Assembly: GCA_002269645.1 (NCBI GenBank)
Contig: NIVC01000856.1
Location: 124,001 to 188,000, forward strand
Direction: 5' to 3'
From: Macrostomum lignano
Taxonomy: Eukaryota
DNA length: 64,000 nt
Positions within the stretch are counted from its first letter, which is position 1. Every line of letters starts with the position of its first letter. Shown one piece after another: positions 49,001-52,000 of the stretch. The notes beneath the pieces are model-generated. The model worked only from the letters and a program-made list of their open reading frames with translations, had not been told where the DNA came from and did not search any database. The translations under genes were made by a program, and so were the position numbers.

Positions 49001-52000
49001 GTTTCCATTTTCTACTTGCTGCACATTCTCAGAGTTTCCATGTTCCACTTGCTGCACATTCCCAGAGTTTCCATGTTCCACTTGCTGCACATTCCCAGAG
49101 TTTCCATGTTCCACTTGCTGCACATTCCCAGAGTTTCCATTTTCTACTTGCTGCACATTCCCAGAGTTTCCATTTTCTACTTGCTGCACATTCCCAGAGT
49201 TTCCATGTTCCACTTGCTGCACATTCTCAGAGTTTCCATGTTCCACTTGCTGCACATTCCCAGAGTTTCCATGTTCCACTTGCTGCACATTCCCAGAGTT
49301 TCCATGTTCCACTTGCTGCACATTCCCAGAGTTTCCATTTTCTACTTGCTGCACATTCCCAGAGTTTCCATTTTCTACTTGCTGCACATTCCCAGAGTTT
49401 CCATGTTCCACTTGCTGCACATTCTCAGAGTTTCCATGTTCCACTTGCTGCACATTCCCAGAGTTTCCATGTTCCACTTGCTGCACATTCCCAGAGTTTC
49501 CATGTTCCACTTGCTGCACATTCCCAGAGTTTCCATGTTCCACTCGCTGCACATTCCCAGAATTTCCATGTTCCACTTGCTGCACATTCCCAGGCACGCG
49601 AAGGTGTATTCAGCACGCCAGTGAAGTATGAGACAGACCAGGCCTATGGGCTACGGTCTGCGATGCTTCACGCCTGCCCCTATCTTCAGCAGGTCAAGGC
49701 TAGAGGGAGGTCTGCACCCGCTATTTGCCGCTGGCAGCCGCAGAACCCCCCTCACGCTGTTTCGCAAGTCGACCCAGGGTACTCGTCCCCGCGTGTGTTC
49801 AAGGCAGACCCTAGGGCTGCTGGACAGACTGGGCTCCGACGCTGGCGACCCATCCAGTGGCTTCGGCCGAACTTGGGTATGCGGGTCTGGCTTGCCAGCC
49901 TGCAGGCCGTGGTACTGCTTAACGTACCCCCTAATGCCTAAGGTGTTTGACCGTGCCGATGGGCTGGAAGGCCGGTGGGTTGTCCGGTCGCTAGCGGTCC
50001 TTTTCTTTTTCTTCTTTCCTCTTTCTTTTGTGACTCAGCTCACTCCTTCCCGCTTTCAGCTATGGCGTCATCCGCCTCTTTAAATCCCGCTGAAGCCGGG
50101 GCCCCGGCAACTCCGGCCGGTGACTCTGGCACCAGCGCCGCCCCACCGGGGGCAGATGGGCTTGCCGCCGGCTCCGCCGGTGACATGCCCGCACGCGCAA
50201 CCGGGCCCTCCGCTGAAGCCCGACGCGCCCGTAACCAACGCCGCAACGAGCGACGACGGCGACTGCGGGATACTGCGGGCCGGCCACCGGCGGAGGGGGA
50301 ACCTAGGGAGGGCGAGGCTGCTGTTGGGCCGAAAGGAGCCACAGCAACCCCTGCCCCCCAGGATACAACCCCCGCTGGTGAGCCACCCAGTAAATCTGCT
50401 ACAAGCGCGGCCGGGCCTTCGGGAACCGCCGCCACCAACTACGCCTCAAAGGTCAAGCTCCAACCGGCGGTCATCGTCTTCGGGGAAGAGCAGGACCTCA
50501 CGGCCGACGAGCTCGACAGTGCCTGGCGCACCATTGATGCTGCGCTCATCGACCAGCTCCTGGCGGGCCGCCCTGTGAGCGTGGTCAAGTCTGCCAAGAC
50601 CGACGGCTGCATCTTCATCTGGTGCAACTCGGAGGAGAGCAGCCGCAGTCTACGCGAGCTTCTGCCAAAGCTGAACTGGCCCAAGAAGCTCGGCAAGCTC
50701 GTCTTCGCCAGCGAGGGCGAGCGACAGAAGACCCAGCGCTTTCGCGTCTGGATCCCGGCCGGCAGTGCCATTAAGTCCGGAGATCAGCTTAGGCAAATAT
50801 TGCTAAAGCTGCACCCCGACCTTGAGGTCAATGGGCTCCTACACCACGCCACTTCCCGCAAGGAGAAGGGGGCTACGGTGATCCTAGGGCTCTCTGATGA
50901 CTGGGCTAAGCGCTTGCCGCCTAAGTCCACAATTCATATTGGTCTGACTCAGCTGACCATCCTCCGTTGCGAGGAGCGGAAAGCTGATGAATCCAAGAAT
51001 GCCAAGGCTTCCGAAACCGGAACTGGGGCCCAGGCTCCTCCGGCAAAGAAGCCGAGGCAAACGGTCGATCCTATGCCCGGTAAGGCAGTTCGCGCTGCTG
51101 AAACCGGAAACCGAAATCGCAGACCCGCCAGGAGCACCCGGAGGTCCGGCCTGATCCAGCGCGCGCTGGACCAGGCCAAGAGCCTTCGGGCGCATCGTGA
51201 GCGGGCCCGCGCCTCTCGCGCTCCACCCCAACAGCCAGAAGGCCAGGCTCTAAGCGGGGAGGCTCCGACCGACTGGTTCGAGTCTGTGACTCACCAAGAG
51301 GCTGGCGCCACCCGCATCGACCTGACCGACGAGGCAGAGGGGACGGGCAGTGACAGCAACGAAGCACACAGGGGAGGCGACGGTAACGTCCACGCTGGGC
51401 TCACGTCCGCGGAGGACTCCACAGCCACCCTAACTGCTGAGGACGCTGAAACTCCCATGGAGGTCTGCGGGTCACCCACCACTGAAAAGGAGGAGGATGA
51501 TCTGCTCAACGATTCCCCAACTGCGTGATAATGATCAGCAACCAGGGAATCCATTGCCTGCAGATTAATCTGCAACATTGCGTCGCAGCCTCGGTCAACC
51601 TTATGCGTTACGCCGAGCTCGACAAGCCGGGGCTCATCCTCGTCCAGGAACCCTGGACTCTCAGAGGTAAGCCTCAAAACGCCCCTGACGGCTATAATTG
51701 TTTTTATACTTACCCTCGCGAGGCCAACCAGCCTCCCAGAGCTTGCATCTTTGCGAGCAAAACGCTCAGTGCGTGGCTCAGATCGGACCTGTCCAACAGG
51801 GACATCTGCGTCATCCAATCCGAGGACCTCCTTCCTGGGAAGACCACCCTCATTGCCTCGGTTTACTTACCAGGTGATGCTGCGGTCGTCCCCAGAGCCC
51901 TCGCTACGCTGGTAGAGCTTTGCTCTGCCAAAAACTACGAGCTCATGGTTGCCGGCGACATCAACGCCCACCACACTCACTGGGGCAGCACTGGCACTAA

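Follow-up and report, generated by a model that had tools for sequence, protein, structure and literature searches.

A predicted HDV-like self-cleaving ribozyme at the 5' end of an RNase H-bearing LINE of the flatworm Macrostomum lignano

Introduction

Self-cleaving ribozymes of the hepatitis delta virus (HDV)-like class lie at the 5' ends of several retrotransposons without long terminal repeats (non-LTR). Those of Baggins1 (Drosophila), R4/Dong, RTE and L1Tc go back to Ruminski et al. 2011 (cited by PMC3774820 and PMC6765202; L1Tc is also a subject of PMC3185411). As a rule, the ribozymes of R4/Dong, RTE, L1Tc and Baggins cut at the element's first base (PMC3774820, PMC6765202). The present analysis concerns a 64,000-nucleotide (nt) stretch of the genome of the flatworm Macrostomum lignano (assembly GCA_002269645.1, contig NIVC01000856.1, positions 124,001 to 188,000 of the forward strand), called the window below and numbered from its first letter. 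It contains a long interspersed nuclear element (LINE) whose first 247 nt, 49594-49840, had been read as such a ribozyme in a preliminary description. Our preferred reading, to which we assign a probability of about 0.78, is that this segment is a genuine HDV-like ribozyme which, by a cut 5' of G49594, would release the RNA of the element from read-through transcripts.

The published descriptor of the class requires a pair between G1 and a pyrimidine, a loop L3 with the pattern U..C-G, whose U and G make a reverse wobble, a P1.1 of two C-G pairs and a J4/2 junction of the form C-R-R-A (PMC6326823). The Macrostomum element shares with R4, RTE, L1Tc and Baggins the double pseudoknot, the coincidence of G1 with the first nucleotide of the element and the presumed release of element RNA from a co-transcript; with L1Tc and Baggins-type elements it also shares a second open reading frame (ORF2) that combines an AP endonuclease (APE) with a reverse transcriptase (RT) and an RNase H. 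It differs from this set by its host, a free-living flatworm and thus another phylum, by its LINE family, by being known from sequence alone, and by a P1.1 made of one A-U or U-A pair and one C-G pair. The ribozyme of L1Tc is a compact 77-nt molecule, whereas here J1/2 alone is a structured insertion of 167 nt.

Ribozymes of R2 elements have a P1 of 6-7 base pairs (bp), 23 to more than 700 nt between P1 and P1', a mismatched P2, a variable P4 and a J1/4 of 0-2 nt; rigid conservation is confined to the catalytic C and four other bases, and in L3 the C and G are essential (PMC3774820). The window element resembles R2 (Eickbush and Eickbush 2010; PMC3774820) in the distance between P1 and P1', the 6-7-bp P1, the mismatched P2, the variable P4 and J1/4 and a conservation limited to the catalytic C and a few bases of the core. 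R2, however, encodes a restriction-like endonuclease in its only ORF, is specific to 28S ribosomal DNA and often cuts upstream in the rRNA, whereas the window element, inserted in a satellite, possesses two ORFs, encodes an APE endonuclease and would be cleaved at its own first base. In drz-Agam-2 of Anopheles gambiae a structured J1/2 domain speeds cleavage by bringing P1 and P2 together (PMC4908430). The large structured peripheral J1/2 and the extended P2 are common to this ribozyme and to the window; in drz-Agam-2 a single helix, P1.2, closes the domain, whereas the window has a string of hairpins, so that a comparable "pinch" effect is not evident. Variation as wide as that of R2 and drz-Agam-2 places the unusual features of the window within the known natural range.

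Two cases are closer in host. The R2 survey includes a planarian element for which an HDV-like ribozyme is predicted (PMC3774820), and non-LTR retrotransposons of Schistosoma mansoni carry at their 5' ends twister-variant ribozymes used in the retrotransposition cycle (PMC8501958). The latter are likewise flatworm LINEs with a ribozyme of a self-cleaving class at the 5' end, predicted in our case, but the class is twister and not HDV-like, the LINE families are others and the host is parasitic. The literature searched held no ribozyme report for Macrostomum and, the planarian R2 aside, no paper joining HDV-like ribozymes, retrotransposons and flatworms. The statement in the preliminary description that the lineage lacked any report thus holds for Macrostomum in that literature, but is too broad in view of the planarian R2 (PMC3774820) and of Baggins elements, which are known carriers (PMC3774820, PMC6765202).

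The fold and its position on the element

The LINE interrupts a 33-bp satellite that runs from 48681 to exactly 49593, and its first base, G49594, stands directly 3' of the 11-bp target-site duplication (TSD; coordinates of all features in Table 1). Since the element begins with G and the base following the 3' TSD copy is A, the 5' boundary at 49593/49594 is unambiguous. G1 of the ribozyme is therefore the first nucleotide of the full-length element, as in the 5'-end ribozymes of R4/RTE/L1Tc/Baggins-type LINEs, and the predicted cleavage site falls between 49593 and 49594; a cut at this place would explain why full-length copies begin at that base. A second copy of the LINE was not found within the window.

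The strands occur in the complete order of a nested double pseudoknot, P1-J1/2-P2-P3-L3-P3'-P1'-J1/4(P1.1)-P4-J4/2-P2', and every segment quoted in the preliminary description, the J1/2 hairpin included, is present at the place given there. P1 extends over 7 bp from the cleavage site, within the 6-7 bp of HDV-like ribozymes, and opens with the wobble G49594.U49796, G1 facing a pyrimidine as in the class. The 3-bp P3, GGG/CCC, closes an L3 that starts with U and contains the C-G of HDV-like loops. The core bases, namely the G1.U pair, U49780, C49784-G49785 and the CAGA of J4/2, agree with the published descriptor (PMC6326823). P1.1 has the two pairs expected, one A-U and one C-G, a base composition unlike the two C-G pairs of the descriptor. 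J1/2 is a string of hairpins followed by about 30 unpaired nt before P2; in the largest hairpin GTGAAGTAT (49621-29) pairs with ATGCTTCAC (49663-71), enclosing CAGACC/GGTCTG.

The insertion target itself (48640-49593 and 55315-55360) is the 33-bp satellite, of about 27 units with consensus ACATTCCCAGAGTTTCCATGTTCCACTTGCTGC and with a related 72-bp variant at its 5' edge; about 1.3 units are left 3' of the LINE.

Conservation and covariation in sister elements

Two sister elements were retrieved. L002 is a 6.5-kb Logan contig (run ERR14788467) with an intact ORF2 that is 63% identical to that of the window, and L001 is a metagenome contig from JGI whose ORF1 is 62% identical. L002 starts with GCCTGCA, which aligns base for base with the first nucleotides of the window element, the homologous G1 being the end of the contig; the block GTATGAGA is found at nt 33-40 of both elements, at identical spacing from the 5' end. 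The L002 contig begins exactly at the homologous G1 yet extends about 540 nt beyond the 3' end of the element; its start may mark a genuine RNA or DNA end, or a place where the assembly broke off at the edge of a repeat.

P3 is GGG/CCC in all three elements. L3 reads UACUCGU in the window, UUCUCGU in L001 and UCUCCGU in L002, leaving U1, C5, G6 and U7 invariant together with the C that opens J4/2. The P4 hairpin is also common to the three, its sequence in L002 being unrelated. The core alignment consists of 53 concatenated columns, J1/2, the interior of P4 and three length-variable junction bases being excluded and the single partnerless P1 position of L002 masked. In it 98.1% of the cells are paired and 6 of the 20 pairs are changed on both sides: positions 3 and 4 of P1, one pair each of the outer and inner P2, and both pairs of P1.1. 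Position 3 of P1 is A-U in the window and C-G in L002, position 4 C-G and U-A, respectively. The outer P2 pair is U-A in the window and C-G in the sisters; within the inner P2 one pair passes from C-G to U-A in L002, and a further one has A-U in L001 against G-C in the other two elements. In P1.1 the A-U/C-G of the window is replaced by C-G/U-A in L002. When the 3' partners were slid by 1-3 columns as a control, pairing was 35-44% and the number of compensatory pairs was 0. RNAalifold, run unguided on the window and L002, closed the structure with the long-range P1 and returned 12 pairs with compensatory changes, including pairs in J1/2 hairpins.

Judged from these sequences, compensation in three separate pseudoknot-forming helices, one of them the 2-bp P1.1, would be hard to obtain without selection for an HDV-like fold. 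The HDV-like double pseudoknot with G1 exactly on the 5' terminus of the element, as put forward in the preliminary description, is thus supported by position, by the conserved bases of the catalytic core and by covariation in two sisters, and the alignment of siblings that it had suggested as a check reveals conserved pairings with compensatory change in L001 and L002 as well as a canonical P2/P3 junction in both. Its P1.1 variant is real and covarying; the rarity ascribed to this variant was overstated, P1.1 and J1/4 being variable in R2 ribozymes (0-2 nt, PMC3774820).

In each of the three elements nucleotides 2-6 of P1 (1-6 in L001) recur once more, 3-11 nt upstream of P2: CACGC at 49753-57 of the window, CCUGC at nt 151-155 of L002 and GCUCGC at nt 76-81 of L001. 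This proximal strand has changed in step with P1', with a joint shuffle probability of about 1e-3; CACGC occurs three times in J1/2 of the window, where the alignment is ambiguous. The strand might provide an alternative P1 and hence a regulated, two-state ribozyme, timing or inhibiting the cleavage at G1 or acting at a second internal site, with J1/2 as a separate module for translation or protein binding, a scheme that we regard as rather unlikely. It could also be the trace of a 5'-extension route of the R2 type, by analogy with that of PMC3774820 (Fig. 8).

Descriptor scans and folding energy

A home-made descriptor was used which combines a 7-bp P1, a P3 of 3 bp immediately preceding P1', an L3 6-8 nt long, a J1/2 of at most 250 nt, two Watson-Crick pairs in P1.1, a P4 stem, a J4/2 beginning with C and a P2 of at least 4 bp. 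Its strict form demands C-N-R-A in J4/2; a relaxed form was also run. The window was matched only after a J4/2 of 5 nt was allowed. Anchored at 49594, the strict form matched none of 20,000 dinucleotide shuffles of the 5' untranslated region (UTR) and the relaxed form 6 of 20,000. Run without anchor on both real strands of the window, the descriptor gave 2 strict and 13 relaxed matches, to be compared with about 0.5 strict and 2.4 relaxed matches per shuffled 64-kb strand. The long J1/2 makes the unanchored descriptor permissive, and a match alone is therefore not significant. When the U..CG signature of L3 was required in addition, the ribozyme was the sole match on both strands of the window, against 1 match in 8 shuffled strands. 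It is the position on the first base of the LINE, together with this L3 signature, that carries the significance.

The other strict match, on the minus strand at 23563-23846, is a false positive: it lies in a repeat of the GGGATT type, its P3 is made of A/T and the core bases of L3 are missing. In energy the HDV fold is competitive, with -91.4 kcal/mol for its nested part and about -8.9 kcal/mol for P2, compared with a minimum free energy of -102.9 kcal/mol.

Search for further carriers

The protein search with ORF1 retrieved one relative, and an ORF1 profile that included a distant member was drawn towards Drosophila DUF4780 proteins and yielded no close relatives. A DNA pattern of the ribozyme core gave at least 120 matches in metagenome contigs, all due to chance among the matches listed and none of these homologous to the UTR or the ORFs, and 2 matches in viral contigs, neither of them homologous to the UTR or the ORFs. 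Several relatives are cut short: the loci of P0004, P0006 and P0034 are cut within ORF1, and the contig of P0040 begins in coding sequence and has no 5' UTR. In P0021, P0025, P0042 and two contaminant contigs from prokaryotic metagenome-assembled genomes (29-38% identity), the sequence upstream holds no HDV-like match bearing the L3 signature. The ribozyme is thus documented only in the group formed by the window element, L001 and L002.

In a distantly related family from marine metagenomes (29% ORF2 identity), three contigs come together at GGGGATCACGCAACC, at about nt 210 of L131, 145 of L133 and 75 of L132, a point that precedes ORF1 by about 85 nt. This family has a short 5' UTR and no HDV-like motif.

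Proposed mechanism and alternative explanations

The steps of the proposed mechanism are as follows. The element would be co-transcribed with upstream DNA, and the ribozyme would fold in this transcript, P1 linking the first 7 nt of the element to the strand immediately 3' of P3 across the 167-nt J1/2, and P1.1, P2, P3 and P4 completing the structure. C49825 would then act as general acid, with a bound Mg2+, in the cleavage of the RNA by itself 5' of G49594. The element RNA would start with a 5'-OH exactly at its first base, and full-length reverse transcription would give new copies beginning at G1 right after the TSD. Self-cleavage, the 5'-OH terminus and a possible help of the folded 5' UTR to translation of ORF1 are proposed by analogy with R2, R4, RTE, L1Tc and Baggins.

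Several observations weigh against this interpretation. The copy in the window has a conflict of register where P2, P3 and J4/2 meet: with a J4/2 of 4 nt, C49829 stands opposite A49776, so that either J4/2 has 5 nt and C49829 is unpaired, or C49829 takes G49777 from P3. The imperfection that the preliminary description had pointed out at G49777/C49829 is therefore real. L001 and L002 are free of it, with a J4/2 of 4 nt and an inner P2 of 6 bp (CCCAAA/UUUGGG and CUCAGA/UCUGAG) that adjoins P3; the P2/P3 junction of the window falls short of theirs by 2 nt on the 5' side and by 1 nt on the 3' side. As both sisters have the canonical junction, the conflict is specific to the window copy or its sub-family. 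Together with the frameshift in ORF2 (see below) it suggests a slightly decayed copy, whose ribozyme may be impaired. The sisters have irregularities of their own. Their J4/2 sequences, CGUG in L001 and CUGC in L002, do not follow the C-R-R-A rule, which the CAGA of the window fits. P1 of L002 has only 6 bp, A7 being opposite C, and a G1-C pair; P1.1 of L001 combines C-G with a U.U mismatch, and a P1.1 with two G-C pairs occurs in none of the family. The contig of L001 starts inside J1/2, so the 5' strand of its P1 is missing, and the covariation rests on three sequences only, which makes the statistics thin. To these points are added a folding energy that is not unusual against shuffles (z = -1.36, not significant), relatives at 29-48% ORF2 identity in which the 5' end is missing or gives no HDV-like match, and the result of Rfam: its HDV-type models have no match in the whole window at gathering score, in 49400-50100 or at both sister loci, nor, with E allowed up to 10, in the core alone (49765-49845). 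We take the failure of Rfam as a limit of the models and a weak test, for these are narrow, leave pseudoknots unscored and penalise a 167-nt insertion.

These observations can be turned into other explanations. The domain could be a conserved structured 5' UTR devoid of catalysis, active for instance in a manner like that of an internal ribosome entry site, in packaging or in protein binding, in which the 7 terminal nt close the domain and the likeness to HDV is superficial. The whole 5' UTR is indeed structured and conserved, also outside the ribozyme, and the J4/2 of the sisters, the register conflict, the silence of Rfam and the permissiveness of a descriptor with long J1/2 are all in keeping with this idea. 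A plain closing helix, however, leaves unexplained the two-sided change at both P1.1 pairs and the covariation of the P2 pseudoknot, as well as the invariant L3 U..CG and J4/2 C at the exact catalytic positions and the fact that, in two families, P1 begins with the element's first nucleotide; we consider it improbable. A pure chance match in a G+C-rich UTR would accord with the background of strict unanchored matches in shuffled strands and with the clear false positive in the GGGATT repeat. It is extremely unlikely given the failure of all shuffles to match the strict descriptor anchored at the first base, the covariation in the sisters and the same 5' end in L002.

Otherwise an internal promoter of the sort common in insect LINEs might fix the 5' end by starting transcription at G49594, and the ribozyme would be a relic, a back-up or dead in this copy. 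In L1Tc promoter and HDV-like ribozyme are united in the same 77 nt (PMC3383444), so coexistence is possible, and the shortened P2/P3 junction and the frameshifted ORF2 would suit a dead copy. Purifying selection, seen with compensatory changes in P1, P1.1 and P2 across families with about 60% protein identity, argues instead that the fold is in use, and we hold this explanation to be unlikely too. Processing by an HDV-like ribozyme is the hypothesis we retain for the family, the irregular junction being a trait of the window copy or its sub-family.

The 5' UTR, coding capacity and classification of the LINE

Table 1. Features of the LINE and its predicted 5' ribozyme (positions in the 64,000-nt window)
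Feature	Position	Strand	Remarks
LINE, whole	49594-55314	+	5.7 kb, non-LTR retrotransposon
5' TSD copy CACATTCCCAG	49583-49593	+	11 bp, the last 11 bases of the 33-bp satellite
P1 5' strand GCACGCG	49594-49600	+	G49594 is G1
J1/2	49601-49767	+	167-nt structured insertion, several hairpins
P2 5' strand GTCGACCCA	49768-49776	+	outer GUCG, bulged A, inner CCCA
P3 5' strand GGG	49777-49779	+	G49777 alternatively able to pair with C49829
L3 UACUCGU	49780-49786	+	U1, C5 and G6 match conserved HDV-like core positions
P3 3' strand CCC	49787-49789	+	
P1 3' strand CGCGUGU	49790-49796	+	U49796 pairs with G1
J1/4 GU (3' strand of P1.1)	49797-49798	+	G49797-C49782, U49798-A49781
P4 hairpin	49799-49824	+	stem in all three elements, sequences differ
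J4/2 CAGA(C)	49825-49829	+	C49825 is the predicted catalytic cytosine
P2 3' strand	49830-49840	+	UGGG, bulge CUC, CGAC
Remaining 5' UTR	49841-50061	+	blocks conserved with sisters
ORF1	50062-51528	+	488 amino acids (aa); weak DUF4780-like central domain
ORF2	51525-55204	+	AP endonuclease, reverse transcriptase, RNase H, then Cys/His motif
3' tail (TAAG)4	55299-55314	+	
3' TSD copy CACATTCCCAG	55315-55325	+	directly after (TAAG)4; satellite resumes here

Between the ribozyme and ORF1 the 5' UTR has several blocks in common with L001 and L002: ACCCATCCAG, a GGC-UUCG-GCC hairpin, GTCCGGTCGCTAGCGGTC and the start context of ORF1, which reads CTTTCAGC(Y)ATG in both the window and L001. A polypyrimidine tract of about 30 nt (50000-50031) is present in the window element alone. 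The conserved blocks and the tract may be elements for translation or protein binding.

The DUF4780 match of the ORF1 product has an E value of 0.039 and lies below the cut-off. The RNase H domain of ORF2, downstream of RT, is assigned by Pfam with E = 1.6e-14 and is also present in the relatives P0002 and P0003. Comparison with the intact 1232-aa protein P0002, which reads through, discloses a frameshift in ORF2 near 54254-54268, the frames being otherwise open to 55204. It separates the RT part from the part with RNase H and the zinc motif and resembles a 1-nt deletion around GC^ACT; either the window copy is not autonomous or the assembly contains an error. Fragments of M. lignano gene models in UniRef match stretches of ORF1 and ORF2 with 94-97% identity. 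The coding sequence by itself thus points to M. lignano or a very close relative (Platyhelminthes) as the host, in which the family is multi-copy.

Elements of the R1 clade encode APE and RT and are not known to carry RNase H. The RNase H domain of ORF2 rules this clade out, and with it one half of the label "LOA/R1-type" which the element had first been given. The layout of two ORFs with APE-RT-RNase H would be compatible with LOA, as would the weak DUF4780 match of ORF1, but neither trait is specific, the layout fitting elements of the I, Ingi, Nimb or Tad type as well.

Three repeats lie downstream of the LINE. The first, a (CTGT)n microsatellite with about 57 units and interspersed TTAGAGTGG, is at 55959-56191, a perfect (TC)51 at 56812-56914 and a 32-bp tandem repeat of 13.6 copies with 94% identity at 56906-57341. 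They are followed on the minus strand by a 263-aa ORF (57394-58185) with runs of Gln, Pro, Ser and Ala, which may be an exon of a low-complexity protein of the host.

Significance

The mechanism proposed here is already known from other LINEs: the Macrostomum element is a well-supported new example and no new kind, and the understanding of LINE ribozymes is unchanged by this case. A precise 5' boundary is now available for annotating the LINE repeat family. The window element, L002 and L001 offer a natural covariation series for the tiny P1.1 helix, with A-U/C-G, C-G/U-A and C-G/U.U, respectively. The finding would add to the known carriers of HDV-like 5'-processing ribozymes a LINE family with RNase H, from a flatworm that is free-living and serves as a laboratory model.

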